A stretch of 64,000 nucleotides of DNA from Adineta vaga (lineage: Eukaryota; Animalia; Rotifera): contig CP075497.1 of NCBI GenBank assembly GCA_021613535.1, forward strand, positions 992,001 to 1,056,000, written 5' to 3'. Every line of letters begins with the position of its first letter. Within the stretch, counting starts at the first letter, position 1. Under the pieces are notes generated by a model, which worked only from the letters and a program-made list of their open reading frames with translations, made no database searches and was not told where the DNA came from. The translations under genes were made by a program, and so were the position numbers. Of this stretch, positions 19,884 through 44,605 are shown piece by piece.

Positions 19884-22800
19884 TTATTTCTTGTCAATAT
19901 TAGCAGTGATTAGTGGAAAGAGAGACGGATCATTCGCGATGACAAGAGCAAGTTGGGTGACCGATAAATGAGTGAAAAAGAGATGAGTATTGATTTGGGT
20001 AGAAATTTCTTGTTGTAATAAAGCCACCACTTGAAGAGCCTTGAGAGACGTACCACCTTGTTCAAAAAATGATTTGTTCACATCTATATCGTTTGTCGTA
20101 CAATTAAGAATTCGAGCAAACACGACTTCAATGGATTTGACAAGCTCTAGTTGCTGCTGTGGTATATCTACAATAGGTGTTGAACACGGTATATTCACTT
20201 CCTAAAACATATGCGTAGTTATAGATGAAAAGTTTTTATTTCATTACCTGATTATTCTCATTTATCTCACTTTTATTCAATGTGATAATCTCATCCAAAG
20301 GCAACTGTAACTGATTTGTACGGCTCGAACCAAAGAGCTGAGTGAGCAATTTAACGAAGCAATTAGCATGTTGTTCAATCGTTTCTCGTTCAAAGACATC
20401 AAACATGTATCCCCACACGCAATCAATGGTCACAGCGTGCTTGTCATAGGCAAATGAGACATCCAAATCGAATTTGTATCCAATGTCAATATCTTTCATT
20501 GGCTTTTTATAAGTAGAAAGACGACATGAGTCACCGAACATGATGTCATCCATATTCGTATAATCAATAACTGTCGTATCGACGCTGAAGATTGTCTGAA
20601 GATATGGAAATTGTAAGTGTGAATTTGGCACGCGGTGCAAATCAATCAATTTATCGTAAGGTAAATGTGCATATTGAACGCTCGCAAGAAATGTTTGTTG
20701 CACTTTATAAACGAGTTCAGTGAAGGAAAGTTTATCAAGATCGGTATTGACGATACGACATGGAAGAATATTGACAAACATACCGATCATTGAGACAATC
20801 TCTGGTCGATATCGATTCTGATGGATTACACCCACACATGCATCTCGATTGTGTGATGAAAGTTGAGCTAGAAAGAGATAGAAACATGTAAGACCCAGTT
20901 GAAATAGAGTGACATTAAGTTCGTGAGCACAGAGAACCATTGAACGAGCAATCGTTGATGGAACAGCAACACTCAGCAATTCGCCTTGACCTGTGCGACG
21001 AGCTGATAATGGTCTTTTAGTACTACCCAAATCCAATTGTCGATCCCAAGCATAGTCACTCAATAGTTCTTTCCAATAAGTACAGGCTTCTGTCATCGCT
21101 AATTTCCGTTCATGGACAGAATAATCGATGTATTGTAAGCAAGGTGGTGACTGTAGTTCGTCACTTGTATAGGCCAGTTTAAGTTCATCCAAGAACAAAT
21201 CTATAGCTCGTCCATCGAATGAACCATGGTGGAAGTTAAATAGGAGTAAATCATCAGTTGATAATGTGTCTTTCTTATTGCCGTGATCGTATCGAAGAAA
21301 ATGACATCGAAATACGCCGTGATGTTCTGTATCAAATGGTGTCCACATTTCTTCGCGTAATAATTTCTTTTGTTGTTGGCCATCATTGATGGTGCTCACG
21401 CGAATAGGATAAGTGATTGTTTGATGGATCGATTGACGCAACATACCACGTTCGACATCGAAAATGAGTCGAGTACGAAAGATCCAATGATTACTGACAA
21501 CGAAGTTTAGTGCACGAAGACACCGCTCGATCGACAAATGACCCGAATCAATTTTAAATATCATATTCATATTATAGATAGGTGCGACTTGTGGCCAATC
21601 TATGAAACGAGTATGCTCAGCCAACCAGATAGTCGTTTGCGCATATGAAGCAGGACCTAAAAGAAAAAGTGTTTTTGTCATTAGTAACAATAATAATCGA
21701 TCTAATAACCTTCGGTGATATTGAGTGGATGCCATGGTAATTCGAGAGTGACGTGACGTTCTTCAAGCAGATGAGCATGATCAGCAATAGTCGTACCCCG
21801 GAAAAGAAAACTAATATCGATTGATTGTCGAAATTGTGTTTGATAGCTATGATGAAGTTTCATGAGAAGAAGTGAGTGACCACCGAGTTTAAAAAAACTA
21901 ATATTGATCGAAGGAATCGATTTTAAACCGAGCACTTGACACCAGATCGATGATATATGTCGTTCCAAGTCGCTGCGATGCTGCTCATCTGGCTTCGTCG
22001 TGTCTGAAGATAGGAGTGAAAAGTCAGGCGATGGTAGTGCCTTTCTGTCCAATTTCCTATTAAGATTCAGTGGCAAGTCGCTCATGAGAATAAACAGAGA
22101 TGGTACCATGTACAAAGGCAGATGTTTGGAGCATTCATCACGCAACATATTCACGTTCAATTGTACTTTCGTTTCAACATACGCGATAAGATGATCTAGG
22201 TTCTCGTAAGTGAACTTGACGACAACACAATTCGTGATCTCAGACGAAGATCGCATAATCTCTGCTTCTATTTCACCTAATTCAATGCGTTGCCCTCTCA
22301 ACTTTACCTGAAAATCGATGCGACCCACAAAAACCAGTTGTCCATCAGGATTAATTCGGGCAAGATCACCCGTTCGATAGAAGACACCGTCATGGTTAGG
22401 GAATCGAACAAGCACTTTTTCACTCGCTTCGAGATCATTGAGATAGCCAGAAAAGATGCCAACACCGCCCAGGAAAATCTCACCGATGTTTCGCCCGTCA
22501 GGTATGACTTGCTGGCCGTAGCTATCAAGTACACGAACTTTTCGACCAGGTAGACATCGACCAATTGGTACAATCTCTGGAATGTCGTCGTCTGTAGGTT
22601 GCATCTTGTAAAATAGCGCTGATATAGTGCATTCCGCAGGAGCATAAACGTTAATTAAAGAGCAGGAAACTGATAAATGACTAAAAACACTCCTCAGTAT
22701 CTTGCCCTGCAGTTGCTCGCCTGGAAAAAGAAAAATAGAAATGTTCTACTTTTAGTCAAATAGTATCTTTTCTTACCACCAACAGTAATTAGCTTCAGTG

Positions 22801-25800
22801 TAGCAAGACATTTAGAAATTCCTGATTCCGCATTGCTACTTAAATAATTGCAAAGAATGGATAGTGACGTGGGTACAAAGTCGATAAGAGTTGCTTGATT
22901 CTTTTCAATTGTTTCACAAAGATAATGTGTGTCAAGATTGCCATGTGGTCGAAGTAGTACTATCGTCGCACCACAAACTAAACTACCCATATACTCGTCA
23001 ACATGTTCATCGAATGAACAACTACCCATTTGAATCGTTACATCATTAGCGCGATTGCACAGAATTTGGTTATATGAATAAACCATATGCGTAAAGTTCC
23101 GATGGTTTGTTGGTACCACTTTGGGTATTCCCGTGGAGCCACTCGTAAAGATCAAGAAAGCAATATCGTTCATCGAAACATTGACATATGCCAGTGGCTC
23201 TGAGTCAGTCGCAATATTTGGACAGAGCAGTAGCGTGTCCATAGCTACATTGTTGTTCTGAATTAAATGATTCGTACTAGAATGAGTGAGAACACATCGT
23301 GGTCGAGTCAGGCCGATCAATAACTGCAATCTTTCGGAAGGTTCATGAGGTGAGAGAGGAAGATAGGAAGCACCACTGAATAGAATTGCCATGATACCAA
23401 TTGACATTTCGACGGAACGCTCAACACATTGACCAACAATATCACCTGACTGCACTTGATACTGGTCAATAAGATGACGAGCCATCAACTGCGATGAATA
23501 GAACAATTCAGCATAGGTGAGCGATTGATCATCAAGAATCACTGCCAATTTCTGTGGATGTTCCCATGCTCGACATGCAAATTGTTCATGAATAGGTAGC
23601 AGATTCAAAGGAAGAAGCAATTGATCACCATTATTTACATGATCTACCAGCTCGTGTTCATGGGGAAGAAGTAGTGTATATTCAAAGATTGATGTGCTTA
23701 CGGACGAGACTAACAGTTGACTAAGAAGACATTCAAATCGACGAGCCATTAACTCAATCGTGACTATTTCAAAGAGATCACTTGAACCATTCAGAGTAAT
23801 GATGATCGATCGTGCTTGAACGTTGTGATGAAAAGAACATGTTAGATCGAACTTAGCCACGCGTCGAGGATCAGTAGTGATCGCGGCAATGAATGAATGT
23901 AAACGTGTATTTGATTCCAGAAAAATTTCATTTCGCTGTTCAATTTCGACATCGAAAAGAGTTTGTAGAGTACCAATGCCTGTTTTCGAAGTGATATCCT
24001 GAAAGGGTAGATGAGCATGTGGAATTGTGGCAAGAGTGAGATCTTTGACGCATTCTACAAGAGAAGTAAAATTCGAGTGTGGCCCAATGATCAGTCGATT
24101 TGGCAATGTGTTCACAAAAACACCGATAACGTTTTCGAGTTCAGCTCGATGTCGATTGGCCGTTGTTGTTAGAATGCATAAATCTGTTTGTTGAGTTAGT
24201 TTGAATAGAAAAACATAAAACATTGAAAGACCAAGTTGGAAAAGAGTCACTTCATACTCAATCAAAAAGTTGAGCATTCGATCGGTAAGATCTTGACTGA
24301 GTTCGAAATCGAAGGTAATACCTAGACCCGATCGAGTTGTCTTATCGTTTGGAAATCGATCGTACGGTAACTGCAGAGTAGTGTTAGTAAATCCGCTCAA
24401 GTGTTGTTTCCAGAATATCATCGCCTCATCCATGTTTATCTTTTTCTCATGCATTGCATAGTCAATGTAATCAAAAACACAAGACTCAAGAGATGCATCA
24501 GTTGAGTAAGCTGTTTTGAGGTCATGGAAGAACAAATCAACTGATACCCCATCAAATGCCGCATGATGAAAGTTGAATATGAGGATATCTGACGGTGTGA
24601 GAAGATCTCCAACGGTTGCTACAGATCGTCGAATAGCGTGACATCGAAATACTCGACCTTCATTCAAATCGAATAGACGAGGATTTGTTTCTTCATCATA
24701 GAGAATCTCTTGCAGATCTCTCTCATTACCAACTACCGTTATCATAATTTCTAATGGTACGTCGTCCACAATCTCTTGTTGGAGAATACCCTCACTCTCA
24801 TCATATACCAGTCGTGTGCGAAGTGTCTTGTGTTTTTGAATTAGTGCAAAAAGTGCTCGTTTTAATCTCTCTAGTGAGATAGGCATCTGAACAATTTCAT
24901 AGACAAGAGGAATGTGATATGTGGCTACTGTCTCTCCCACATTACCGAAACGAACACGTTCATCCAAGTAGAGACGAGTTTGAGCGAAGGAAGCAGGTCC
25001 TTAAACAAGATCAATAGGGATGACATTATATTCGAGAATAATTTACCTTTGTTGATGTTGAAGGAATACCATTGTGGTTCTATGGTCATCTGATGAGTTT
25101 CGAGTAATTGAGCATGATCGAAAATGGTTGCACGACGAAACAAGTCACTAATATTAATTGATTGTTGAAATCGAGTTTGATAGGCATGGTGTAGCTTCAT
25201 GAGAAGAAGAGAATTACCGCCTAACTTGAAGAAACTAAGGCTTGCGGAAGGAATCGATTCAAGATGGAGCACTTGTGACCAAATTGACGAGACTTGTCGT
25301 TCGATTTGTGTTCGACATTGATCGTCTCTCACAGTCAGATCAGTGGAGAGGAGAAGTGAAAAGTCAGGAGGTGGAAGTGCTTTTCGATCTAGTTTACCGT
25401 TTAGATTGAGTGAAAAATGATCGACAGGAATAAACAACGATGGCACCATGTACAGAGGCAAGTGTTTCATGCACTCGTCACGCAACATATTCACGTTCAA
25501 ATGCACTTTCGTCTCAACATAACTAACCAGGTGTTCTACGCCATCATGATCGACTTTGACGACAACACAATTCGTGATCTCAGACGAAGATCGCATAATC
25601 TCTGCTTCTATTTCACCTAATTCAATGCGTTGCCCTCTCAACTTTACCTGAAAATCGATGCGACCCACATAGTGTAAATCACCTGACGTGCTGTCGATAC
25701 GGACCAGATCGCCAGTTCGATAGAATATTTCAGCTCTATGGGGTAGCAGTACAAGCACTTCGTTCGACAAATCCGGTTGTTGTAAATACCCTCGAAATAT

Positions 25801-28800
25801 GGCCGCACCGGCGATGAACAATTCACCAATTTGATGCTGGATGAGAACAGGCTGCAAGTAAGTATCAAGAATTTGACAGGTGTAATAGGTAAGTGGGTGA
25901 CCGATGGGCACGCTATTCGATTTCAGATCATCCTGTGTGACTAGGTGAAAAGTGGAGATGAGAGTGCATTCTGCGGGTCCATATAAATTATAGAGTTGAG
26001 CAGTCGAATTCATTAGCGGGTAAATGGTCGAAGCTGTTTGCGGTAAAAGAGCCTCACCTAATGAACATAATCGTCGTATGCTCATCAATGAGAGTTGTTG
26101 ATTCATAGATTTGTGCAGATGTTTAGCAAGGATGGCTATAAGAGTTGGAACCATGATGAGAACTGTTGTTTGATGTCGTTGGACCATAGATGCGAAATAA
26201 TTCATGTCAAGATTACCGTTCTGACGAAGCAGACAAAGCGTTCCGCCTAACCATAATGTACCGAGAATTTCTAGCATATGAATATCGAAGGTAGGTTGTG
26301 TCGTTTGCAGCACAACATCATGATGCATCATGATCGACGAATGAGTCAGTGAGTTGATACACACGGCAAAGTTTTTGTGAGTGATCGGAACCACTTTAGA
26401 TGTACCTGTTGAACCACTCGTAAAAACTAAGTAAGCTGTCCGTTCTACAGAATGTGAGTTCATCTCTTTGGTAATGATGTTATTCCATGACGATGAAAGA
26501 ACTTGTTCAATATCAACAACATTTGATGATATGAGTGCGTTTGTTCGTCTGTGAGTAAGGACACACTTGGCTTGCACTTGTTGAACCAATGAGAAGAGTC
26601 GTATAGACGGTTGATCCGAAGATAGAGGACAATATGAAGCACCGCTCATCAGAATCGACAATATACCGATGATCTATTATAAGTGAAGAGAATATTACTA
26701 CTATCCTTAAATCGAAAGCGACTTCAACTTACCATTTCGATGGAGCGCTCGACACATTGAGCGACAATGTCGTCTGGCTGCACTTGAACTCGGTCAATGA
26801 GATGGCGAGCCACTAGCTGTGATGAATGAAGTAGTTCAGCATAAGTTAGTGATTGATCATCAAGAATCACTGCCAACTTTTGTGGGTGTTCGCAAGTTTG
26901 ATGCGCGAACTGCTGTTGGATAGTTTGAATATTTGAAGGAAGTAGGAATTCCTCACTGCTGTTCATGTTTTGTAGTAATTGGATCTCATGTGGCAATAGA
27001 AGCGACAATTCACAGATTTGATTTGAGGTAGGAGAGGAAAGTACGTGGTTCAATAGTGAATGAAAGCGACGAGCCATCAATTCAACTGTCTTTGGTTCAA
27101 ATAGATCACTCGAAGCATCGAGTGACACTTGGATTAAACGTGTTGGCACGTTATAATGCAGCGAACATGTAAGATCGAATTTAGCCACACTTTGCGGATC
27201 AGTAGTTGTAGTCACGAGAGGACGCAAAATGATGTCGGAACTAAGTGCGACTCGATCGTGATGGTCAGTTTCAACAACAAATAATATCTGGAAAGCCGTA
27301 CTAGTCACACTCGAAACAATATCTTGATAGGGCAAATGTGCATGAGGTAGTGTAGCGAGAACGAGTTCTTTCACGCAGCCAACGAGAAATTCAAAGTTCT
27401 TATATGGCTCGATGGAAAGTCGATGTGGTACTGTGTTGACGAAAAAGCCAATAATATCTTCAAGCTCTGCCCGATTTCGATTTGCTGACACCGTGAGAAT
27501 ACATAGGTCTGTTTCTTGAGTTAATTTAAACAAAAATGCGTAGAATGTAGCCAGACCCAACTGAAAGAGAGTCGTTTCACACTCATTCAGATGATTTAGC
27601 ATACGATCAACAATATGTGAAGAAAGTTCGAAAGTTGCGGTTGACCCACGGCCTGATCGGATATTGCTGTCGTCTGGACGGCGATCGTAGGGCAACTGAA
27701 AATGAGGTTTGCTAAAGCCATCCAAGTGTTGTTTCCAGAAAACTCTTGCCGCGTCCATGTTTGTCTCTTTCTCGTGCATGGAGTAGTCGATGTAATCGAA
27801 GCTACATTGTGGAAGAGACCGATCAGTCGAATAGGCGTATTGTAAATTGTGAAAGAAGATGTCAATTGACGCTCCGTCAAATGCCGCATGATGAAAGTTG
27901 AATATGAGGATATCTGACGGTGTGAGAAGATCTCCAACGGTTGCTACAGATCGTCGAATAGCGTGACATCGAAACACTCGACCTTCATTCAAATCGAATA
28001 GACGAGGATTTGTTTCTTCATCATAGAGAATCTCTTGCAGATCTCTCTCATTACCAACTACCGTTATCATAATTTCTAATGGTACGTCGTCCACAATCTC
28101 TTGTTGGAGAATACCCTCACTCTCATCATATACCAGTCGTGTGCGAAGTGTCTTGTGTTTTTGAATTAGTGCAGAAAGTGCTCGTTTTAATCTCTCTAGT
28201 GAGATAGGCATCTGAACAATTTCATAGACAAGAGGAATGTGGTACGTGGCCACTGTCTCTCCCACATTACCGAAACGAACACGTTCATCCAAGTAGAGAC
28301 GAGTTTGAGCGAAGGAAGCAGGTCCTAAAACAAGATCAGTGAGAATGATATCCGAAAGGTCGATGTCTTACCTTTGCTGATATGAAACGACTGCCATTGC
28401 GGTTCTGTGGTGACCTGGTGAGTTTCGAGTAATCGGGCATGATCAACAATAGTTGCTTTACGAAAGAATTGACTAATTAATATAGAATTTGTGTCAAATT
28501 TAACTATTTTCTGATAAGAATAATACAGTTTCATGAGAAGAAGAGAATTGCCACCTAACTTGAAGAAACTAAAGCTCGTTGAAGGGATCGTGTCGAGTTG
28601 AAGAGTCTCACACCAAATAATTGATATGCGTCGTTCTATTTCTGTCTTGGGCTCCTTACCATATTCGTGACTAGCCTGTGTAATTATTATATCGGGGTTC
28701 GGAAGACGCGCTCGATCGACTTTCCCATTTTCGGACAATGGCAGCTTATCGAGTAAGACAAAGACAGACGGTACCATGTAGGGAGCTAATCTTTCTTGAC

Positions 28801-31800
28801 ATTTCTGTTGAAGCATCTGTTCAATGTTCTTGTCTGTTGTTTGAATAAAGGCCGCTAAATACTCATGTCCTATACTTGAATTCTCATGCTTGATAACAAC
28901 ACATTTGCCAATATTCGGAGATGCATCAGATAAAGTCTGTTCGATTTCTGCCAACTCGATCCGTTGTCCTCTCAATTTGACCATAAAATCTCGTCGACCT
29001 ACATAGTGAAGAGAATGGTCTGTGTTAAGTCTGACAAGATCACCTGTCTTGTAATATTGTTCTCCTTGTTCTGAAAGCTCAGTAATAAAAACACGCCGTG
29101 TCAAATCGTCTCGATTCAGATATCCAGGGAAAACGCTCGGTCCACTGACAAATAATTCACCAATTTGATGACCATCGGGCAAAATTGTTTCCATGTGTTG
29201 ATCCAAAATACGGCACTTAAGATTAGGCGAAAGTCGACCAATACAAACGGGCTCGATCACTTGTTTGATATCCTGAGTGATCTTATAAATGCTAACATCA
29301 GTACATTCAGCTGGTCCATATAAGTTAAAAATCGTAGCTCGAGTATTTTGTCGAAACTTTTTCAAAGATCGAGCATCCATCGGTTCACCTGACGAACACA
29401 GTGAGCGAAGTGTGCACAAACGTCCGAATGCATTGTCCTGCTCGAGTTGCTCACAAATGACAGTCAAGTGTGATGGTACCGAGTGCATGTAGGTCGCTTG
29501 ATGCGATTCGACGAGACGAGTCAAATAGTCCAATTGTATGTTTCCATCTGGATGAAGGAGAATCGATGTACCACCCATAAATAGACATCCGAGTAGTTCG
29601 GGAACATGAGCATCAAATGAACATGGAGTAATCTGCATGGCTGTGTCTGTAGGCAATAGTGAACCAATGTGAGCATAAGAGGCGACGGTGAGCAAAAGAT
29701 TTCGATGGGTCAATTGAACACCTTTGGGCTCACCTGTTGAACCGGATGTAAAAATGATGTAGGCTACTTGATCGACGCTACGAATGGGTGCGTCGAATGG
29801 CTGCACGATGGTATCGATTCCATTGAACAGTGCGAAAGAAGAAAGATTGATACTCATCGATTGGAATTTGTTTGCTGTTGCATCGTGTGTTAAAACATAA
29901 GCCGCATTTGTCTGATGGAAAATCGTTTGAAAACGTTTTTGAGGATGATTTGGTGTGAGCGGACAATAAATTGCACCACACATCATAGTCGCTAGAATAC
30001 CGAGCGGCATTTCGAGACTTCTCTCTACACATAATGGTACGATATCATTCGGTCGAATACGACATACATTGATGAGATGATAGGCTACGACTTGAGCAAA
30101 ATGAAAAAGCTCAGCATATGTCAAAGACTGATTATCAAGAACGACCGCTAATTTCTGTGGATGTTCGGCGACTCGGCATGCAAATTGTTCATGTATAGGC
30201 AGGAGATTTGTTTGATGTTGAAATTTATTGTCCGTGTTTATCGCTCGCAGTAGTTCGACTTCGTGTGGAAGAAATAGAGAAAGTTTACAAACAGAAGATG
30301 AAACAGAAGTGAAGATCTGAGAGAGTAGATACTCAAAACGACGAGCCATAGTCGTAACTGTTTCAGTATCGAACAGATCGAGAGAAGCATTAAACGAAAG
30401 TATTATGGAATGTGATTGAGAATTGTAATCGAGAGAACAAGTCAGATCAAACTTAGCGACATTATCGTCTTGTGTGGTTGCAAGTGGAATCAATCGAAAA
30501 GTGGGATCATCCGGTAATTGATGAATTGGTTCAGCGAGAAACAATGTTTGTATACCTGGCAGCTCACCCATTTCTTGATATGGAAAATAGGCATGACACA
30601 TCGATTCGAGACACATCTGCTTGATATACGCAAAGAATATCGCGACAGTCAAAGTAGGGTCGATGATGATTCGTTGAGGTAATGTATTCGAGAAAAATCC
30701 AATAATATCTTTCAAATCAACGCGGTAACGATTAGCCGATATTGTAAGCACGCATAGATCAGTTTCTTGAGTGAGTTTAAATAGAAATATATAAAATGCG
30801 GCAAGGCCGACTTGGAATAAAGTCATTTCCCGCTCGGTCATAAAGATAAAGATTTTATCGATCACATCTCGAGACAGCTCTAAACTCACGGTTAAGCCAC
30901 GACCAGATCGCGCGTTCTTTTCCTTTGGAAATCGATCGTAGGGCAACTGTAATAGACTGTTGGCGTATGCGTTCAAACGACATTTCCAATAAGTTCTCGC
31001 TTCATCCATGTTCATCTCTTTCTCATACATGGAGTAGTCGATGTAATTGAACAAGTCACGTGAAAGAGATCGATCACTGGAATAAGCTTCTTTCAAATCA
31101 CGAAAAAAGATACCAACAGATGTCCCATCAAATGCCGCATGATGAAAGTTGAATATGAGGATATCTGACGGTGTGAGAAGATCTCCAACGGTTGCTACAG
31201 ATCGTCGAATAGCATGACATCGAAATACTCGACCTTCATTCAAATCGAATAGACGAGGATTTGTTTCTTCGTCATAGAGAATCTCTTGCAGATCTCTCTC
31301 ATTACCAACTACCGTTATCATAATTTCTAATGGTACGTCGTCCACAATCTCTTGTTGGAGAATACCCTCACTCTCATCATATACCAGTCGTGTGCGAAGT
31401 GTCTTGTGTTTTTGAATTAGTGCAGAAAGTGCTCGTTTTAATCTCTCTAGTGAGATAGGCATCTGAACAATTTCATAGACAAGAGGAATGTGGTATGTGG
31501 CCACTGTCTCTCCCACATTACCGAAACGAACACGTTCATCCAAGTAGAGACGAGTTTGAGCGAAGGAAGCAGGTCCTTAAACAAGATCAATAGGGATAAC
31601 ATTATATTCGAGAACAACTTACCTTTGTTGATGTTGAAGGAATACCATTGTGGTTCTATGGTCATCTGATGAGTTTCGAGTAATTGAGCATGATCGAAAA
31701 TGGTTGCACGACGAAACAAGTCACTAATATTAATTGATTGTTGAAATTGAGTTTGATAGGCATGGTGTAGCTTCATGAGAAGAAGAGAATTACCGCCTAA

Positions 31801-34800
31801 CTTGAAGAAACTAAGGCTTGCGGAAGGAATCGATTCAAGATGGAGCACTTGTGACCAAATTGACGAGACTTGTCGTTCGATTTGTGTTCGAAATTGATCG
31901 TCTCTCACAGTCAGATCAGTGGAGAGGAGAAGTGAAAAGTCAGGTGGTGGAAGTGCTTTTCGATCTAGTTTACCGTTTAGATTGAGTGAAAAATGATCGA
32001 CAGGAATAAACAACGATGGCACCATGTACAGAGGCAAGTGTTTCATGCACTCGTCACGCAACATATTCACGTTCAAATGCACTTTCGTCTCAACATAACT
32101 AACCAGGTGTTCTACGCCATCATGATCGACTTTGACGACAACACAATTCGTGATCTCAGATGAAGATCGCATAATCTCTGCTTCTATTTCACCTAATTCA
32201 ATGCGTTGCCCTCTCAACTTTACCTGAAAATCGATTCGGCCAACAAAAACTAGTTGTCCATCAGGAGTAATTCGGGCAAGATCACCGGTTCGATAGAAGA
32301 CACCGTCATGGTTAGGGAATCGAACAAGCACTTTTTCACTCGCTTCGAGATCATTGAGATAGCCAGAAAAGATGCCAACACCGCCCAGGAAAATCTCACC
32401 GATGTTTCGCCCGTCAGGTATGACTTGCTGGCCGTAGCTATCAAGTACACGAACTTTTCGACCAGGTAGACATCGACCAATTGGTACAATCTCTGGAATG
32501 TCGTCGTCTGTAGGTTGCATTTTGTAGATTAGGGCTGATATGGTGCATTCAGCAGGAGCATAAATATTAATCAACAAACACGAATTTGATAAATACTTGA
32601 ACAATCTCTTCGCCGTCTTCCCTTGCAACTGTTCTCCTGAAAGACGTAAAATCTGCATTCTTTTAGAAAAATAGAGTGCTGTTATTTACCTCCTACAGTA
32701 ATTAGCTTCAGTGTAGCAAGACATCTAGAAATGTCTTCGTCTAAAATACTTTTCAAATACTCGCACAGGATCGATAAAGATGTTGGTACGAAATCCGCAA
32801 GAGTGGCTTGATTTCTGCGAATTGTTTGACAGAGATAAGCGCTGTCAAGATTACCGTGTGGTCGGAGAAGTACGAGTGTCGCACCCAACATAACACTGCC
32901 CATCAACTGTTGAGTATGCTCGTCAAATGAACAACTGGACATTTGAATGATGATGCTGCTCGCGCCGTTGAAATCATATTGTCCATATGAAAAGATTAGA
33001 GCTGTAAAGTTCCGATGGTTTGTTGGTACAACTTTGGGTATTCCCGTGGAGCCACTCGTAAAGATCAAGAAAGCAATATCGTTCATCGAAACATTGACAT
33101 ATGCGAGTGGCTCTGAGTCAGTCGCAATATTTGGACAGAGCAGTAGCGTGTCCATAGCTACATTGTTGTTCTGAATTAAATGATTCGTACTAGAATGAGT
33201 GAGAACACATCGTGGTCGAGTCAGGCCGATCAATAACTGCAATCTTTCGGAAGGTTCATGAGGTGAGAGAGGAAGATAGGAAGCACCACTGAATAGAATT
33301 GCCATGATACCAATTGACATTTCGATGGAACGCTCAACACATTGACCAACAATATCACCTGACTGCACTTGATACTGGTCAATAAGATGACGAGCCATCA
33401 ACTGCGATGAATAGAACAATTCAGCATAGGTGAGCGATTGATCATCAAGAATCACTGCCAATTTCTGTGGATGTTCCCATGCTCGACATGCAAATTGTTC
33501 ATGAATAGGTAGCAGATTCAAAGGAAGAAACAGTTGATCACCATTATTTAAATGATTTAGCAGCTCGTGTTCGTGGGGAAGAAGTAGTGTATATTCAAAG
33601 ATTGATGTGCTTACGGACGAGACTAACAGTTGATTAAGGAGACATTCAAATCGACGAGCCATTAACTCAATCGTGACTATTTCAAAGAGATCACTTGAAC
33701 CATTCAGAGTAATGATGATCGATCGTGCTTGAACGTTGTGATGAAAAGAACATGTTAGATCGAACTTAGCCACGCGTCGAGGATCAGTAGTGATCGCGGC
33801 AATGAATGAATGTAAACGTGTATTTGATTCCAGAAAAATTTCATTTCGCTGTTCAATTTCGACATCAAAAAGAATTTGTAGAGTACCAATGCCTGTTTTC
33901 GAGGTGATATCCTGAAAGGGTAGATGAGCATGTGGAATTGTGGCAAGAGTGAGATCTTTGACGCATTCTACAAGAGAAGTAAAATTCGAGTGTGGCCCAA
34001 TGATCAGTCGATTTGGCAATGTGTTCACAAAAACACCGATAATGTTTTCGAGTTCAGCTCGATGTCGATTGGCCGTTGTTGTTAGAATGCATAAATCTGT
34101 TTGTTGAGTTAGTTTGAATAGAAAAACATAAAACATTGAAAGACCAAGTTGGAAAAGAGTCACTTCATACTCAATCAAAAAGTTGAGCATTCGATCGGTA
34201 AGATCTTGACTGAGTTCGAAATCGAAGGTAATACCTAGACCCGATCGAGTTGTCTTATCGTTTGGAAATCGATCGTACGGTAACTGCAGAGTAGTGTTAG
34301 TAAATCCGCTCAAGTGTTGTTTCCAGAATATCATCGCCTCATCCATGTTTATCTTTTTCTCATGCATTGCATAGTCAATGTAATCAAAAACACAAGACTC
34401 AAGAGATGCATCAGTTGAGTAAGCTGTTTTGAGGTCATGGAAGAACAAATCAACTGATACCCCATCAAATGCCGCATGATGAAAGTTGAATATGAGGATA
34501 TCTGACGGTGTGAGAAGATCTCCAACGGTTGCTACAGATCGTCGAATAGCGTGACATCGAAATACTCGACCTTCATTCAAATCGAATAGACGAGGATTTG
34601 TTTCTTCATCATAGAGAATCTCTTGCAGATCTCTCTCATTACCAACTACCGTTATCATAATTTCTAATGGTACGTCGTCCACAATCTCTTGTTGGAGAAT
34701 ACCCTCACTCTCATCATATACCAGTCGTGTGCGAAGTGCCTTGTGTTTTTTAATTAGTGCAGAAAGAGCTCGTTTTAATCTCTCTAGTGAGATAGGCATC

Positions 34801-37800
34801 TGAACAATTTCATAGACAAGAGGAATGTGATATGTGGCCACTGTCTCTCCCACATTACCGAAACGAACACGTTCATCCAAGTAGAGACGAGTTTGAGCGA
34901 AGGAAGCAGGTCCTTAAACAAGATCAATAGGGATGACATTATATTCGAGAACAACTTACCTTTGTTGATGTTGAAGGAATGCCATTGTGGTTCTATGGTC
35001 ATCTGATGAGTTTCGAGTAATTGAGCATGATCGAAAATGGTTGCACGACGAAACAAGTCACTAATATTAATTGATTGTTGAAATTGAGTTTGATAGGCAT
35101 GGTGTAGCTTCATGAGAAGAAGAGAATTACCGCCTAACTTGAAGAAACTAAGGCTTGCGGAAGGAATCGATTCAAGATGGAGCACTTGTGACCAAATTGA
35201 CGAGACTTGTCGTTCGATTTGTGTTCGACATTGATCGTCTCTCACAGTCAGATCAGTGGAGAGGAGAAGTGAAAAGTCAGGAGGTGGAAGTGCTTTTCGA
35301 TCTAGTTTACCGTTTAGATTGAGTGAAAAATGATCGACAGGAATAAACAACGATGGCACCATGTACAGAGGCAAGTGTTTCATGCACTCGTCACGCAACA
35401 TATTCACGTTCAAATGCACTTTCGTCTCAACATAACTAACCAGGTGTTCTACGCCATCATGATCGACTTTGACGACAACACAATTCGTGATCTCAGATGA
35501 AGATCGCATAATCTCTGCTTCTATTTCACCTAATTCAATGCGTTGCCCTCTCAGCTTTACTTGAAAATCAATTCGGCCAACAAAAACTAGTTGTCCATCA
35601 GGAGTAATTCGGGCAAGATCACCGGTTCGATAGAAGACACCGTCATGGTTAGGGAATCGAACAAGCACTTTTTCACTCGCTTCGAGATCATTGAGATAGC
35701 CAGAAAAGATACCGACGCCGCCCAGAAAAATCTGACCAATGTTTCGGCCATCAGGTATGACTTGTGTATTCCATTTGTCGAGCACAAGAACTTTTCGACC
35801 AGGTAGACATCGACCAATTGGCACAATCTGTGGAATATCATTATCGTGAAACTTGATCTTGTAGTATAACGCCGATATAGTGCATTCTGCAGGAGCATAT
35901 ATATTTGCCAAAACACAGGTTGACTGCAAGTGATTGAAGATGGCCTTGACCGTCTTTCCTTGAAGTTGCTCACCTAAATCGACAAATAGAACGGAAATAT
36001 CAATATGAATAGTTCTTACCTCCGACGGTAATCATTTTCACAGTAGCGAGATGTTTGGATCTGGTTAGTTCTATTTGTTTGCTTAAGTATTCGCCCAGAA
36101 TCGCTATTGATGCTGGCACAAAGTCGATACGAGTAGCTTGATTTTTTTCAATTGTTTCACAAAGATAATGTGTGTCAAGATTACCATGTGGTCGAAGTAG
36201 TACAATCGTCGCACCACAAATTAAACCGCCCATACATTCGTTGGCATGTTCGTCGAATGAACAGCTGGCCATTTGAATTATGATATAATTTGAGCCATGG
36301 AACTGGAGTTGTCTGTACGATTGCACCATGTATGTGAAGTTCCGATGGTTTGTTGGTACAACTTTGGGTATTCCCGTGGAGCCACTCGTAAAGATCAAGA
36401 AAGCAATATCGTTCATCGAAACATTGACATATGCGAGTGGCTCTGAGTCAGTCGCAATATTTGGACAGAGCAGTAGCGTGTCCATAGCTACATTGTTGTT
36501 CTGAATTAGATGATTCGTACTAGAATGAGTGAGAACACATCGTGGTCGAGTCAGGCCGATCAATAACTGCAATCTTTCGGAAGGTTCATGAGGTGAGAGA
36601 GGAAGATAGGAAGCACCACTGAATAGAATTGCCATGATACCAATTGACATTTCGATGGAACGCTCAACACATTGACCAACAATATCACCTGACTGCACTT
36701 GATACTGGTCAATAAGATGACGAGCCATCAACTGCGATGAATAGAACAATTCAGCATAGGTGAGCGATTGATCATCAAGAATCACTGCCAATTTCTGTGG
36801 ATGTTCCCATGCTCGACATGCAAATTGCTCATGGATGAGCAGAAGATTGGAAGGAAGTAGGAGCTGATTACTACTGTCCAGTTGATCAACGATCTGAATT
36901 TCATGGGGAAGAAGCGGCGAAAATTGAGAGACTGCAGTTGAAGCGGAGTAAGTAAGCAATTGACGGAGAAGACATTCGAAACGTTGGGCTAATAATTCGA
37001 TAGTGATTGTCTCGAACAAATCGCTGGAAGCATTCAGAGAAACAGCCATAGATCTTTTGTGGACGTTATAATGAAGCGTACAGGTCAGATCAAACTTGGC
37101 CACACTGTATGGATCGGTGGTGCTACCGTTCAATGGATGTAAAAGTGTTTGAGAATCGAGAGCAATTTCATCATCTTGTAGTGTTTCAACATCAAAAAGT
37201 GTCTGCAACGAAGCAATATTGGTGTTCGTAGCAATCTGCTGAAAGGGTAGATGAGCGTATGGAAGTGTAACGAGAGCGAGATCTTTGACACGTTGCATTA
37301 GTGAAGTGAAACTGGAATGCGGCTCAATGATGAGTCGATATGGTAATGTATTGACAAAAACACCAATGAGGTTTTCAAGTTCCGCTCTTATTCGATTTGC
37401 AGTCACTGTTAGTACGCAAAGATCGTTTTCTTGCGTAATTTTGAACAGAAACATGTAGAATGCGGTCAGTCCCAGTTGGAAAAGAGTAGTCTCATGTGCC
37501 TCTATAAAGAGAAGCATGTGATCGACTAAGTCGTTAGATAGCTGTACAGTGACCGTTGTACCACGACCAGATACATTTTTATCACTTCGTGCGTGATCAT
37601 ACGGCAGCTGAAGGTAATAGTTCGAAAAGCTATCTAATTGTTGTTTCCAAAAAGTTCTTGCCTCGTCTAGAATTATTTCTTTCTCATGTATCGCATAATC
37701 AATGTAATCAAACATAGAAGATGAAAGAGGCTGATCGGAGGAATAGGCTTCTTTTAGATCTTGAAAGAACACGTCGATTGACCCGCCATCAAATGCTGCA

Positions 37801-40800
37801 TGATGAAAATTGAACACCAATACATCGGATGGCTGAAGATGATCGGCATCAATGGTTGGCGATCGTCGAATAGCATGACATCGGAACACTCGCCCTGCAC
37901 TCAGTTCGAACAAGCGAGGGTTCGTTTCTTCATCATATATAATCTGTTTTACATCTGACTCTGTCTCAACTATTGTCAAGATGATTTCTAGTGGTACTCG
38001 ATCCAAAACCTCTTGTTTTAGTACACCAGCATTCTCATCAAATGTCAGACAGGTTCGAAGTGCCTTGTGTTTTTTAATTAGTGCAGAAAGAGCTCGTTTT
38101 AATCTCTCTAGTGAGATAGGCATCTGAACAATTTCATAGACAAGAGGAATGTGATATGTGGCCACTGTCTCTCCCACATTACCGAAACGAACACGTTCAT
38201 CCAAGTAGAGACGAGTTTGAGCGAAGGAAGCAGGTCCTTAAACAAGATCAATAGGGATGACATTATATTCGAGAACAACTTACCTTTGTTGATGTTGAAG
38301 GAATACCATTGTGGTTCTATGGTCATCTGATGAGTTTCGAGTAATTGAGCATGATCGAAAATGGTTGCACGACGAAACAAGTCACTAATATTAATTGATT
38401 GTTGAAATTGAGTTTGATAGGCATGGTGTAGCTTCATGAGAAGAAGAGAATTACCGCCTAACTTGAAGAAGCTAAGGCTTGTGGAAGGAGTGGATTCAAG
38501 ATGGAGCACTTGTGACCAAATTGACGAGACTTGTCGTTCGATTTGCGTTTGACATTGATCGTCTCTCGCAGTCAGATCAGTGGAGAGGAGAAGTGAAAAG
38601 TCAGGTGGTGGAAGTGCTTTTCGATCTAATTTACCATTTGGATTGAGTGGAAAATGATCGATAAGAATAAACAACGACGGCACCATGTACAATGGAAGAT
38701 GTTCACTGCACTTCTCATGTAACACACTGATATTCATGGTAAGTTTCGTTTGAACATAGGCGACGAGATGTTCTAAATTGTCATGAACTTGTTTCATAAC
38801 AACACAATTGATAATTTCGAGTGAAGAACGCATAATGACGGCTTCAATTTCGCCTAATTCGATACGTTGTCCTCTTAACTTGACTTGAAAATCAGTTCGT
38901 CCAACATAATGCAAGAGATTTGTTCTGGAGTCGACGCGTACGACGTCGCCTGTTCTATAGAATACACCTTGTTTTTGAGGCAAAGATATAAGTGCTTTGC
39001 GCGTTAAATTTGATTGATTGAAGTAGCCGCCAAACACAGCCTCACCACCAATGTAGAGCTGACCAACTTGATCGTCGCAGAGAACAGGCTGCAAATATGT
39101 ATCAAGAACATGACATGTGTAGCCGGCGAGTGGACGACCGATAGGCAAGGAATCTTGTTGAATGTCGTATTTTGTGACAAGATGAAAGGTTGTTGCGAAA
39201 ATGCATTCAGTGGGCCCATAGAGATGGTAGATAAGTGCAGTCGACCTTAAACAGTTGTAGAGTTGAGATGCTGTTTGAGGTCGTAGTGATTCACCTAAGC
39301 ATAAAAAATGTTTCTACATTGAATTGTTTCGCAATTTACTTTATTTTATAAAAATGCAAATGTTACCTATGGAACAGAGTCGCTTCAGACTGAACAATGC
39401 TTGATGTTGATCAGGAAAGTTGTGTAAATGTTGAGCAAGTATGATAAGAAGCGTGGGTACGGTAACAGCAAAACTTATGTGATGTCGTTGTATGACCGAC
39501 ACCAAATAGTTCATGTCAAGATTTCCATTGGGTCCAAGAAGACAAATAGATCCACCTAGCCAGAGTGTACCTAGAATTTCTTGTATGTGAATGTCAAATG
39601 TAGGTGGTGTTGTTTGTAGAACAGTATCGTTGTGTACCATAATCGCCGAGTAAGCGAGTGCATCAATACAGGCGGCAAAATTTTTGTGACTGATTGGAAC
39701 CGCTTTGGGTGTGCCCGTCGAACCACTTGTAAAAATCACATAAGCAATTGATTGGACGTGAACATTGATATTATCATCATCAGTCCAATTTGTCGAGCTC
39801 GACGATGAGAATATTTGGTTGATGTCAACAACATTTGATGATATGAGGGTGTTTGTTCGACTATGAGTAAGGACACACTTTGCTTGTACTTGTTCAATCA
39901 ATGATCGGAGTCGTGTGGATGGTTGATCCGGAGATAGAGGACAATATGAAGCACCACTCATCAGAATCGACAATATACCGATGATCTGTTATAAGTCAAG
40001 AGAATATCGCTACTATCCTTAAATCGAAAGCGACTTCAACTTACCATTTCGATGGAACGCTCGACGCATTGAGCGATGATGTCTCCTGACTGCACATGAT
40101 ACTGGTCAATGAGATGATGAGCTAGCAGTTGCGACGAGTGCAACAGTTCAGCATAAGTTAGTGATTGATCATCAAGAATCACTGCCAATTTCTGTGGATG
40201 TTCCTCGGCTCGATATGCGAACTGTTGGTGGATAGGTAGTAAATTTTTATGGAGACGCAGCTGCTCACCGCTGTTTAGGTGATTTAGTGCTTGAATTTCC
40301 TTTGGAAGAAGCAGTGAAAATCCAAAGATTGGAGTCGTCGGTGGGGAGGACAACAGTTGGTCAAGAAGAGATTTGAATCGACGAGCCAGAACAATAATTG
40401 TAGATTCATCGAACATATCGCAAGCGTACACGAATGAACCATTTACTTGTCCGCATTCATTCATCGCGATTGATAGGCACAAATCATGTCTAGTCGCATT
40501 AGGTGGACGAATACAACGAATAAGCTCACATCTCTCGGCCAATACTATTTTACTTGTGATCGTCTGAAATCGAAATCCGATTGTCATATAAGGCAATGTT
40601 TTAGTACTGTCGGCTATACGATGAGCCATTATCTTAACAAGTTCGATCAAATGAACAAAAGTTTTTTCAGGTTCGACATATAATCGAAATGGAACGAATC
40701 GATCAAACATGCTAGTTGTACGGGTGATTTCGTACCGACTCGCATTAGTCACATGGCTATCGATAATCAGGTCTTGGCATTGTGTCAATTTATAGAGAAA

Positions 40801-41905
40801 AACATAGTAGGCGGATAAGTACACTTGAAATAAGGTAGCTTGTGCTTGAGAAGCGAAAATGAGGAGTGACTCGCCTCTGTCTAGTTCCAGATTCACCATT
40901 GACGCACGACCCGTGCGAATTGACGTTGATGGACGACGATCGTAGGGCAATTGCAGCTGGTCCCCAAAATCTTTTAATGTCGTGTTCCAAACTTCTGATC
41001 CTGATAACATATTGTCATCTCTATCGTCTCGTTCCAACAATGTATAATTAATATAGATCGATGTAAGATCGTCGTTCACATCAAGCGTGAGAGTTGAATA
41101 AGCCTCTCTCAAATCGGTCAGAAAAATGGACTCTCTGAAATAATCGAAGATTGCATGATGAAAATTAAATAGCAACATATCGCCAACAGTGAGAAGATCT
41201 TCCTCGATTCCATTGCTTCTTCGAATCGCATAACAACTGAATATTCGACCAATGGTAAGATCAAAATGAGTTCGATTTGTTTCTTTGTCTTCACTTTCGA
41301 CCTTACTCATTTGCACTAAGGAAATAATCTCGGTATCATCGAAAGGTACAATGCATTGGTGCAGTTTGTTACTACCATCAGATGTGGCTGTCAGACGGAT
41401 ACGTAATGTTGGATGTTTGCTGACAAGGAGTGCGAGTGCACGATTAAGACGTTGAAGAGAAAGAAATGAATCTGGTGATATGGTAAATACAAGCTGTGAC
41501 GCAGAACTAAGGCGCTCTCGTTCATCCAACCAAATGTACTCTTGCGCAAACGAACCAGAACCTAGGAAAAAAAGCACGATTCAGGCAAAATTGACAGCTG
41601 ACTTTACTTTGATTTGCATGAGGTAGCCTTTTCTCGTTTGTCATGAGTAGACGAACATGTTGATCGATGGTTGGTTGTGTCAAAAAGTCCAGTAGATTGA
41701 GATAGTGACATGGAGTCAAATCGAGTTGATAGTGATTGAAAAGTTGCATTAAAGTCAAAGATGAACCACCCAAAGCGAACCATGTTATAGACTCTTCATT
41801 AGGAACTTTGTCTAGATGCAACAGTGAACACCAGAGTTGACGTACCTTGTCATGAAGTATCTTGTGCTCAGAATCGTTCGAGTTTGTAGAATTTTCTAGT
41901 GACAT
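19884..41905 (-). CDS. Multimodular nonribosomal peptide synthetase, ~7098 aa, T0-(C-A-T)x6-C-T, 15 exons
   Basis: ATG at 41905, stop at 19884-19886. GT-AG introns (plus-strand coordinates): 41562-41607, 39986-40044, 39295-39366, 38237-38283, 35974-36019, 34913-34959, 32637-32689, 31576-31622, 28325-28371, 26674-26732, 25000-25046, 22721-22776, 21657-21709, 20202-20247. Removing them (725 bp) leaves 21297 nt = 7099 codons in one frame. Six A domains (FTSGSTG.PK, FD, Y(G/A)P.E, Y(R/K)TGD, GR.DF.VKLRGQRIEL, NGK.DR), seven C domains (HHAIFDY, HHAAFDG x5, HHGSFDG) and eight T domains (GG[S/N/H/T]S). No TE, R, E or MT domain seen. Confidence 0.92.
23091..25665 (-). repeat. Near-identical internal NRPS repeat (A C-terminus, T, 47-bp intron, C, A N-terminus), copy matching ~33004-35575
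   Basis: Reading the two regions side by side shows only scattered substitutions over ~2.5 kb at an offset of ~9.9 kb, including the intron. Confidence 0.85.
31130..32520 (-). repeat. Internal NRPS repeat block (A C-terminus, T, intron, C N-terminus)
   Basis: Matches ~24555-25665, ~34465-35720, partly 38058-38630 and 27880-28324. The 32220-32520 part also matches ~22305-22604. Confidence 0.8.
33004..35720 (-). repeat. Near-identical internal NRPS repeat, copy matching ~23091-25665 and in part 36337-36830
   Basis: Same text in several copies, e.g. the DNA encoding DERVRFGNVGETVATYHIPLVYEIVQMPISLERLKRAL and HEQFACRAWEHPQKL...PTNHRNFT. Confidence 0.85.
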
Positions 41906-42677: not shown

Positions 42678-43172
42678 ATGTCGATAGAAAGTAGAACAAA
42701 ATTCCTGCACACAAAAGAAATCAATGTTTCCAACAACGAATCAGACCAGACTTCCCAACCTCCATTTAAAATGCCTCGAGCACCACCCCATGTCTACTCT
42801 TGTTTTGTCATTAATCGTACGCAGCATCCTATAGAATGCATGGTTCACTATGACGGCCGTCCAGGTGAAGACAAATTTAATGAAGACATTCACGTCACCA
42901 TTTCTGCTAATGATGAAAAATTTTTCCCTCGTTGTTTGTTTCAACCAGATTTACCTGATTCGTACTGCAAATGGGTCAAAATTGTAACTCATATTAAGGT
43001 GAAGAAGCACGATGGTAAAGTGCTCGAAGTCTACTATCCATTTGATCATGTTTATTGTCCAATTCGTAATTGGGAATTTCATGTTTGCGACGAAGGCGAT
43101 ATTTTATCAAAACCACCCACCCGTCCTGCAAACTTACTAAAATATGAAGGACTTGATGAATACGAACGATGA
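42678..43172 (+). CDS. Small hypothetical protein (164 aa, or 133 aa from the ATG at 42771), head-to-head with the NRPS
   Basis: Clean ORF with coding-like composition followed by AATAAA (~43181). No recognised family. Confidence 0.6.
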   Translation: MSIESRTKFLHTKEINVSNNESDQTSQPPFKMPRAPPHVYSCFVINRTQHPIECMVHYDGRPGEDKFNEDIHVTISANDEKFFPRCLFQPDLPDSYCKWVKIVTHIKVKKHDGKVLEVYYPFDHVYCPIRNWEFHVCDEGDILSKPPTRPANLLKYEGLDEYER

Positions 43173-43619: not shown

Positions 43620-44605
43620 AAAATGTTTGAACCATCTGACCTATATGGTCGACATCACCTTTTGTATTATTATAACATAAGATAATCTGTGGCTTTTTTC
43701 CTTTCCTCATCGACGATTATCTGATCATGATAAACAGATGACAGCAAAATCGCAATGATGAGTATCAGGTTGCAACTCTCGTGGAATTTCCTTCTTATTT
43801 CGTCGAAAAGCTCCTACAAGAGTCGTTTGAACACGTAAAAGATCTTCTTCCAACTCTACACTAGTACAATAGTTGTCCGTAGTAATAGTTCATTCTGTAT
43901 TGATCCAATGATGTACCAATTGTTGTACTAGATTAAGAATTAGATTTGTATCTTTGTCTGCAGCTACTGCATCAGGTTGACGCCCCAGATAAACATCAGC
44001 ATTCAACGGATATACTGTATCCGAATCGCAACACCAAAAGATCTGAAGCTCGTATTTTCCAGGTTTATTAGGGATATATTGATGAAAATTACATCGGCCA
44101 CTGTGAGTGATCCACCAGGCGTATAACATATTTGTAGCCGGGCTAAGAATATTGTCCATAGATCTCTTATTGCTGCCAGTTTATCTACTTTCAGTTTTTC
44201 TTCTCGTGATGATGTATTGCCAAATTGGCAAAACCGAAGTAAGCTTTTGAAACGATTCTTTGTCAAAGTTGCTCGAAATATTGGTCGTCCATATTTCATC
44301 AGAATATGTGTTCTCCCATTGGCTTTCTTTGTCAGAATTTTGCTTATTCCATTGTTTCAAAATCAGATGCATTCGTCGATTGATTTCCTTCACTAAAAGA
44401 AGAACAATTTCTTGAGCTATCAGAAGCTGAAATGCATCTTTCACAGTTTTTATACCTACAGCTGGTCGTTCAATACCATTTTGCTGCCGCAAGATATTAG
44501 CTGATGGTATTTTTCCATTGGGAGTTACCTTTAATATTCATTGCCGTACAGATTTAGCTGTAAATATTTGAACCGGTGATTGTTCAACTTGTGATTTACG
44601 TTTCG
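43620..44605 (-). mobile_element. Degenerate piggyBac (PGBD4-like, DDE_Tnp_1_7) transposase relic
   Basis: Fragments in three frames: FTAKS..NILRQQNG, GRPIFRATLTKNRFKSLLRF, DKLAAIRDLW...YTPGGSLTV, QYIPNKPGKYELQIFWCCD, ITTDNYCTSVEL and TTLVGAFRRNKKEIP. Frameshifts and stops; the first catalytic DE motif is lost. No TIR/TTAA ends identified. Confidence 0.85.

Follow-up and report, generated by a model that had tools for sequence, protein, structure and literature searches.

A 15-exon, six-module non-ribosomal peptide synthetase gene of the bdelloid rotifer Adineta vaga, with a lone carrier at its head and a condensation-carrier unit at its tail

Described synthetases and the A. vaga locus

Multimodular non-ribosomal peptide synthetases (NRPSs) are rare in animals, with the bdelloid rotifers as the main exception. 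Here, we analyse an NRPS gene of the bdelloid Adineta vaga, which lies on the minus strand between positions 19884 and 41905 of a 64,000-nucleotide stretch of contig CP075497.1 (G000:C6:992001-1056000, in the Av20 genome of 100.8 Mb and six contigs). The whole stretch is referred to below as the window, and positions given without a prefix are positions in it. The gene encodes, in this order, a stand-alone carrier (T0), six modules each formed by a condensation (C), an adenylation (A) and a carrier (T) domain, and a final C-T pair (C7-T7), an architecture written T0-(C-A-T)6-C-T.

The gene itself is not new: it is already catalogued by Nowell et al. (2024, Nat Commun 15:5787; PMC11258130), one of two papers that describe dozens of acquired NRPS and polyketide synthase loci in bdelloids, most of them in a rotifer-specific clade. 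In that study the bdelloid NRPS clade was found to be horizontally acquired, and some of its members to be induced by a fungal pathogen (PMC11258130). The locus is listed there as 'Cluster 6.1' (Supplementary Data 9: Chrom_6 region6.1, 999703..1050019, minus strand, 'intact', aa_length_est 7117), within a three-domain set and with 14 open reading frame (ORF) pieces that run from Chrom_6_1132 (PCP, 1011884-1012198, that is 19884-20198 in the window) to Chrom_6_1145 (Condensation_LCL, 1032036-1033529). After subtraction of 992000 the published ORF coordinates are those of the ORF pieces of the present model; coordinates, strand and 'intact' status agree, and the estimate of 7117 residues compares with 7098 here. 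The locus does not represent a new kind of system, and its listing in the literature already exists as this supplementary-table entry (PMC11258130). The published table is without the T0 exon (41608-41905), an exon-intron model, a remark on the ends of the gene and a cross-genus comparison. What is added here is the exact 15-exon model with the unlisted T0 exon, the description of T0-C1 and C7-T7 as a conserved head and tail around a variable array, and a paralogue that retains a loading A domain. A preliminary description, made from the letters of the window, had spoken of an animal assembly line; this was right, but the assembly line had been catalogued before.

At the level of layout the gene recalls the echinocandin system of Emericella rugulosa. 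There, the six-module NRPS EcdA carries at its C-terminus one more condensation domain, for which cyclisation is expected, and its N-terminal T domain receives linoleate from EcdI (PMC4294208). The preliminary description had invoked this layout, with a T0 loaded in trans, in agreement with the published work (PMC4294208), and had rightly called the rotifer gene analogous and not necessarily homologous. Both genes have an A-less N-terminal T, six C-A-T modules, a further C domain and no thioesterase. The rotifer gene differs from EcdA in the additional conserved T after the last C, in a C7 that is not like a fungal terminal C by sequence, in having no linked ligase and in its bacterial-type ancestry.

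Two other kinds of synthetase resemble the ends of the gene. Module 9 of SyrE, in syringomycin synthetase, is a C-T unit charged in trans through SyrB1/SyrC; in SyrE this unit is followed by thioesterase domains, and the loaders are encoded in the same cluster. An A-less C-T unit ends the collinear line in SyrE and in the rotifer gene alike, whereas in the latter nothing follows T7 and no loader is known. The aryl-capped siderophore synthetases MbtB, PchE and HMWP2 begin with an N-terminal carrier that is loaded by a stand-alone salicyl-AMP ligase, and the domain after this carrier is a cyclisation (DxxxxD) domain. In these enzymes, as in the rotifer gene, the initial carrier stands directly before a domain of the condensation family; C1 of the rotifer gene differs in its HHxxxD motif, and no aryl-acid ligase is linked to it.

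Gene model and domains

From 42028 to 19887, the minus strand holds 15 stop-free segments in head-to-tail series. Each junction contains a single short GT..AG intron, whose donor resembles GTAAG, whose body is rich in AT and whose phase fits the two exons; the 14 introns range in size from 46 to 72 nt, and none of the codons split at the junctions is a stop. Between the ATG at 41905 and the stop at 19884-19886 the coding exons total 21,297 nt including the stop (7,098 codons), and the coding sequence without the stop codon, 21,294 bases, predicts 7,098 residues. All domain and homology searches were made with the exons taken one by one, and gave the following assignments:

Exon 1, 41608..41905, minus: ATG at 41905, leader of about 20 residues, stand-alone carrier T0 (LGGSS, Ser at about 41764); PF00550, motif, phase
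Exon 2, 40045..41561, minus: C1 (HHAIFDY) and the first 60 or so residues of A1; PF00668, PF00501 positions 2-60
Exon 3, 39367..39985, minus: A1 core with the A3 motif TSGSTGTPK; PF00501 positions 60-295
Exon 4, 38284..39294, minus: end of A1 (A7, A8, A10) and T1 (LGGNS); Pfam, motifs
Exon 5, 36020..38236, minus: C2 (HHAAFDG) and A2 as far as the GGE motif; Pfam, motifs
Exon 6, 34960..35973, minus: end of A2 and T2; Pfam, motifs
Exon 7, 32690..34912, minus: C3 and A3 as far as the GGE motif; Pfam, motifs
Exon 8, 31623..32636, minus: end of A3 and T3; Pfam, motifs
Exon 9, 28372..31575, minus: complete module 4 (C4-A4-T4) in a single exon; T4 motif FKLGGNSLLLMKLY
Exon 10, 26733..28324, minus: C5 and start of A5; Pfam, motif alignment
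Exon 11, 25047..26673, minus: remainder of A5 and T5; Pfam, motifs
Exon 12, 22777..24999, minus: C6 (98% identical to C3), A6 to the GGE motif, left part of the divergent pocket island
Exon 13, 21710..22720, minus: end of A6 and T6 (LGGHS); Pfam, motifs
Exon 14, 20248..21656, minus: terminal C7 (HHGSFDG); Pfam, motif alignment
Exon 15, 19884..20201, minus: terminal carrier T7 (FFEQGGTSLKALQ) and stop 19884-19886; PF00550 at 2.3e-12
Introns 1-5, minus (donor G / last G): 41607/41562; 40044/39986; 39366/39295; 38283/38237; 36019/35974
Introns 6-10, minus (donor G / last G): 34959/34913; 32689/32637; 31622/31576; 28371/28325; 26732/26674
Introns 11-14, minus (donor G / last G): 25046/25000; 22776/22721; 21709/21657; 20247/20202

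The positions of the AMP-binding profile of Pfam are continuous over the exon borders (2-60, 60-295 and 289-384 in exons 2, 3 and 4), which makes a chance joining of the exons implausible. Junctions, phases and Pfam continuity thus confirm what the preliminary description had assembled, one frame from some 15 ORF fragments through 14 small canonical introns; the start at 41905 and the end at 19884 that it gave are both exact, the intact protein of about 7100 residues that it announced has 7,098 codons and no internal stop, and the leading T0, the six C-A-T modules and the C-T end had been read correctly, as judged by Pfam and motifs. At the level of RNA, four sequencing runs were examined, none of them recorded as RNA, and two of the four were DNA, with the introns retained. 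A third, probably RNA of a relative, shows intron 4 unspliced; in the fourth, probably RNA of the same species, one 166-nt contig skips precisely this predicted 47-nt intron (38237-38283). The locus is a real, intact, single spliced gene for one polypeptide of about 7,098 residues.

The order T0-(C-A-T)6-C-T follows from Pfam matches exon by exon together with the catalytic motifs. PF00668 matches all seven C domains (E 1e-35 to 1e-56), with HHxxxD in all seven and HHxxxDG in C2-C7. PF00501 matches six A domains, each of which has TSGSTGxPK, YxTGD, GRxDxQVK and the GK/RK lysine (A10). The GGxS attachment serine is present in all eight carriers; T4 is below detection by Pfam (E<0.01), yet its motif, FKLGGNSLLLMKLY, can be read in exon 9. 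No E, MT, TE or R domain was found in the gene. With its C, A and carrier motifs, and with phosphopantetheinyl transferase (PPTase) loci in the genome (see below), the gene encodes a multimodular type I NRPS.

The domains at the two ends stand apart from those between them. C7 is 29-35% identical to C1-C6, and C1 is 35-39% identical to the other C domains; T0 and T7 show 20-35% identity to T1-T6, and T1, T2, T3 and T5 are 96-98% identical to one another. In exons 14 and 15 a C domain is followed by a T domain after a short linker, with no A-domain remnant between them. By sequence comparison C7 and C1 match the bacterial elongation C structures TycC, LgrA and Txo, and at E<=0.001 neither finds a terminal-C structure of fungal origin. 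In the antiSMASH table of Nowell et al. (2024; PMC11258130) the seven C domains are without exception Condensation_LCL. The NCBIfam profiles gave no specific finer subtype for the C or T domains, and the weak best matches of T7 among them, carriers that precede TE or R domains, are merely a hint.

The substrate pockets were read by motif anchoring, not by alignment to GrsA, and gave the codes DIQVCILFAK (module 1), DENDTGIISK (module 2), DEQDTGIISK (module 3), DAPHCSLDVK (module 4), DILICLLLIK (module 5) and DEDDTGVISK (module 6), of which those of modules 2, 3 and 6 are related to each other. All six pockets keep Asp235, so that the substrates would be alpha-amino acids.

The bacterial domain types, and a GC content of 0.41 in the gene against about 0.30 in the flanks, might suggest that bacterial or fungal DNA had contaminated the assembly. 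However, the gene has 14 spliceosomal introns, at positions conserved in Rotaria, it lies in a chromosome-scale contig with eukaryotic genes on both sides, among them a HECT/SPRY gene and a CYP4/CYP3-type P450, and its best relatives are rotifer genes. The introns and the synteny effectively refute contamination.

Conserved ends and duplicated modules

The terminal C domain has orthologues in other bdelloids (Rotaria, Adineta and environmental contigs) at 52-88% identity, and no close paralogue in the A. vaga genome. The A. vaga exons were aligned onto the contigs that carry C7 orthologues; together with two further loci of A. vaga, the copies are:

Rotaria sp. Silwood1, CAJNZB010000384.1 (L033:4-13298): (end of T0)-C1-A-T-C-A-T-C-A-T-C7, three modules
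Environmental bdelloid contig ERZ26165376 ctg340092 (L035:6320-11672): T0-C1-A-T-C7-T7, one module
Further environmental bdelloid contig (L036): ...C-A-T-C7, transposon insertions, then T7
Relic on A. vaga chromosome 3 (Chrom_3, about 4.512 Mb; G000:C3:4512219-4515000, L022:1219-3990): T0, C1 with the exon-2 A stub, last third of C7, T7
Cluster 6.2 of Nowell et al. (G000:C6:1134572-1141745, L037), minus, 105 kb away: A-T-C-A-T-C-T, distant paralogue

The Rotaria orthologue has introns at the same positions as the A. vaga gene. The Chrom_3 relic (T0 44% identical, C1 and A stub 43%, last third of C7 61%, T7 61%) is a pseudogene with in-frame stops at L022:2173-2175 and 2842-2844; its A stub is joined directly to C7, and the left edge of the deletion is the border of exon 2 and intron 2. 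In the three copies with a readable start, the relic and the one-module contig included, a stop is reached within a few codons upstream of the T0 start. At the other end, the serine of the T7 motif, FFEQGGTSLKALQ, does not vary among six homologues, all of which terminate just past this motif; T7 is under constraint. Between head and tail there are no modules in the pseudogene, one in the environmental contig ERZ26165376 ctg340092, three in Rotaria and six in A. vaga. The alignments thus show a head, T0-C1, and a tail, C7-T7, that are old and conserved, with a number of modules in between that differs among rotifer lineages.

On two of the contigs other features were seen. Fragments of a reverse transcriptase and of a hAT transposase lie between C7 and the T7 exon at L036:5343-12795. 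A metagenome contig (L034:1-12109) carries an intron-less, shortened A(end)-T-C7-T7 fragment, 63% identical to C7, which adjoins bacterial-type genes (MlaD, T6SS Tle1-like, DUF4258/DUF2283, ABC ATPase) with a GC content of 0.52-0.54; the contig may come from a rotifer subtelomere that has newly taken up foreign DNA, from a chimeric assembly or from a bacterial relative.

Cluster 6.2 shares with the present gene the C-T tail and a T0-like head carrier, and differs from it in having a cis loading A domain, of amino-acid type, before the head carrier and a single internal module; its C domains are about 30% identical to those described here. No carrier in the genome matches T0 better than its first T (47%), and none matches T7 better than its last T (39%). 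An A-less C-T tail may be common in bdelloid NRPSs. In the simplest history, an ancestor of the form A-T-(C-A-T)n-C-T would have lost its loading A before the copies on chromosomes 3 and 6 diverged, after which the number of modules would have varied.

The modules themselves bear signs of their origin. Each of the seven C domains, even the divergent C1 and C7, is preceded by an intron at the same phase-1 position between T and C ('...K|G|PASFAQ'), and introns 4, 6, 8 and 11 have near-identical sequences; two more intron positions within the A domain are present in some modules only, and module 4 has no internal intron. Apart from two stretches, the DNA of modules 3 and 6 is 97-100% identical, and so is the intron; the stretches are an island of 65-73% identity at 22607-23105 that encodes the A-domain substrate pocket, and 21810-22207, the T6 region. 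Because of the near-identical introns, the common T|C intron site and the identity of modules 3 and 6 in DNA, the duplication is placed after the gain of the introns, and these comparisons show six modules that arose by tandem duplication inside the rotifers and have since been partly homogenised, except in the pocket islands. Tentatively, and as a possibility that we hold to be somewhat doubtful, head and tail could be a fixed start-finish cassette within which bdelloids expand, contract and re-specify modules by tandem duplication and by gene conversion that spares the pockets.

A gene with such repeats could in principle owe its six modules to the assembly, or be a silent or decaying relic. 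Parts of the modules are indeed 97-100% identical, chromosome 3 carries an ohnologous copy that has become a pseudogene, unchallenged bdelloids hardly express their NRPS genes (PMC11258130), and the RNA evidence obtained here is minimal. However, the longest exact repeat inside the gene is 695 nt, resolvable by long reads, so that a collapsed or inflated module count is unlikely in a long-read assembly; 21.3 kb of coding sequence are without a stop or frameshift, the motifs of seven C, six A and eight T domains are intact, the C7 orthologues are 52-88% identical across genera, and an independent curation also gave an 'intact' gene, of 7117 residues (PMC11258130). We therefore consider a relic or an artefact to be very improbable, and keep to an intact gene with six modules.

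As to its ancestry, exon 9, which holds the whole of module 4, is 28-33% identical to bacterial NRPSs, the named ones being from Nocardia, Gordonia and Kibdelosporangium, in a search against 1.84 billion representatives whose ranking was dominated by the summed scores of long bacterial NRPSs. These identities and the length-driven ranking rule out the naming of a donor lineage. An A. vaga paralogue is 40% identical to exon 9, as compared with about 30% for the nearest non-rotifer modules. The gene lies on a bdelloid chromosome, has introns and has its nearest relatives in rotifers, as do the members of the acquired NRPS clade of bdelloids. By its sequence affinities it is of foreign, bacterial-type ancestry and belongs to the bdelloid-specific NRPS clade, in agreement with PMC11258130, where this clade is seen as old.

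Loading, release and the surroundings of the gene

We consider it moderately probable that Cluster 6.1, as a spliced rotifer NRPS, works as follows. T0 would be the carrier of a former loading module that has lost its A domain, and would today receive an acyl or aminoacyl starter in trans; C1-C6 would add six L-amino acids selected by A1-A6; and C7-T7 would be an A-less seventh module, in which C7 couples the chain to a unit held on T7, itself charged in trans or by A6. Release would be by an enzyme neither fused to the synthetase nor encoded nearby. The peptide so made would be capped, linear or cyclic, and six residues long or longer, and plausibly would serve the rotifer in chemical defence. 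Because Cluster 6.2 has the same head carrier with a cis A domain, T0 is more simply seen as the carrier of a former loading module than as a dedicated lipid acceptor. Since T7 is conserved after C7, the tail resembles a seventh module that lacks its A domain more than it does a terminal cyclase, and the predicted terminal unit is, as in SyrE, an A-less C-T unit with a conserved carrier motif.

The searches for partners gave the following. Two Sfp/ACPS-type PPTase loci are present in the genome (PF01648, at G000:C2:8650604 and G000:C5:9958259), both outside the window, and could prime the eight carriers; the preliminary description had called for such a genome search, and had reported no ligase or PPTase within the window, nor did our searches of the 64 kb find any. 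No AMP-binding match was found in the window outside the gene, and no other NRPS-like fragment outside 19884-41905; no acyl-AMP ligase was found beside the gene on the orthologous rotifer contigs, and a ligase may lie elsewhere in the genome. An upstream exon for a loading A was considered and discarded, as there is no NRPS-like match outside 19884-41905 and, in the Chrom_3 relic and in L035, the frame does not stay open for more than a few codons before the homologous T0 exons. A downstream TE or R exon was likewise discarded, with no ORF of at least 60 residues in the 2 kb between the stop and a convergent MFS gene. The thioesterase family PF00975 has only eight matches in the genome, the nearest about 0.55 Mb from the gene, and a genome-wide search found no R-domain match near it. 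The gene does not end in a fused release domain, be it TE, R or a last C, and the preliminary description, too, had seen no thioesterase in the enzyme; its last domain is T7, and the window holds no TE or R.

The formal match to EcdA, with an N-terminal T, six modules, an extra C and no TE, suggests another scheme, in which an unlinked fatty-acyl-AMP ligase acylates T0, six residues are added, and C7 macrocyclises a lipohexapeptide bound to T6, T7 being dispensable or a helper. Neither T0 nor T7 has an A domain to serve it, and C1 is divergent (35-39% identity, DY for DG), as a starter C might be. However, the carrier that comes after C7 has an attachment site strictly conserved in the homologues, C7 itself has a canonical HHxxxDG, and its relatives by sequence are bacterial elongation C structures and no fungal terminal C. 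In addition, antiSMASH types both C1 and C7 as LCL, neither this locus nor the orthologous contigs have a linked ligase, and in Cluster 6.2 the shared head carrier comes with a cis A domain of amino-acid type. We regard this scheme as unlikely. Of the echinocandin-like assembly line that had been put forward the layout stands; the terminal cyclising C does not, since the conserved T7 comes last, and no ligase is linked. The resemblance to echinocandin synthetase is in this sense partly supported, and only formal.

That no trans loader was found near any copy bears on a further scheme, in which adjacent A domains do the loading in cis, after the manner of those fungal siderophore synthetases that have surplus T-C units. 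T0 would share A1 with T1, and T7 would share A6 with T6, to give an octapeptide with identical first two and last two residues. The one-module orthologue T0-C1-A-T-C7-T7, with three carriers, one A domain and no other A within 6 kb upstream, fits this scheme and would make a homotrimer. Against it, T0 and T7 are only 20-35% identical to T1-T6, while T1, T2, T3 and T5 are 96-98% alike, which suggests different partners, and we give cis loading a small chance of being right.

Charging in trans of a former loading carrier, with C7-T7 as an A-less seventh module, remains the account we prefer, and several observations weigh against it. Neither a release enzyme nor a loader, be it for T0 or for T7, was identified, and every mechanistic step beyond the domain order is inference. 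C1 has HHAIFDY, that is HHxxxDY in place of HHxxxDG, and in the Rotaria orthologue no T7 exon was found in the 3.3 kb searched after C7. To our knowledge none of the six pocket codes equals a known code, and hence no substrate is named. The expression support is one contig, which does not establish a single 21-kb transcript; this spliced contig is of low depth, and its 22-nt side is common to paralogous junctions of several modules.

The genes around the NRPS do not form a conserved biosynthetic cluster: a P450, an MFS transporter, an alpha/beta hydrolase and an acyltransferase_3 lie near it, and none of the four recurs next to the Chrom_3 relic or in L033-L036. The P450, considered as a tailoring enzyme, was rejected as a metazoan-type CYP4/CYP3 that is not syntenic with the relic or the orthologues. 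The alpha/beta hydrolase, a candidate for a specific release partner, was rejected as a member of a large bdelloid family that is not conserved beside the orthologues, although a role in release is still conceivable. Other features of the window are:

968-9517, plus: adjoining open frames of 2,228 and 604 residues with SPRY and HECT domains, in all probability a single giant gene, with hardly any introns, for a HECT E3 ubiquitin ligase
14150-15232, minus: the single-exon alpha/beta hydrolase, whose nearest non-rotifer relatives are fungal and epoxide-hydrolase-like (33-38% identity); the family itself may be a horizontal acquisition
42678-43172, plus: ORF of 164 residues without a Pfam match, divergent from the start of the NRPS gene; a 75% identical copy lies in the same divergent orientation beside the Chrom_3 relic, and none beside the L033-L036 orthologues
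43890-44492, minus: overlapping short ORFs, situated between the genes for the NRPS and the P450 and similar to a degraded piggyBac-type transposase

The locus is among the few complete, frameshift-free and fully resolved ones, and thus a good candidate for heterologous expression and product discovery. The exon model, the T0 exon and the C-T tail tell experimenters what to clone, and the conserved ends, without a loader or a release domain, indicate that both must be supplied in trans. The copies with one, three and six modules show a module number that changed within an animal lineage, which informs the evolution of assembly lines. If head and tail are indeed a fixed cassette, related animals would make peptides of different length from one scaffold, a natural case of modular NRPS re-engineering, and priming and release would be carried out by trans-acting partners of a kind undescribed for any animal.

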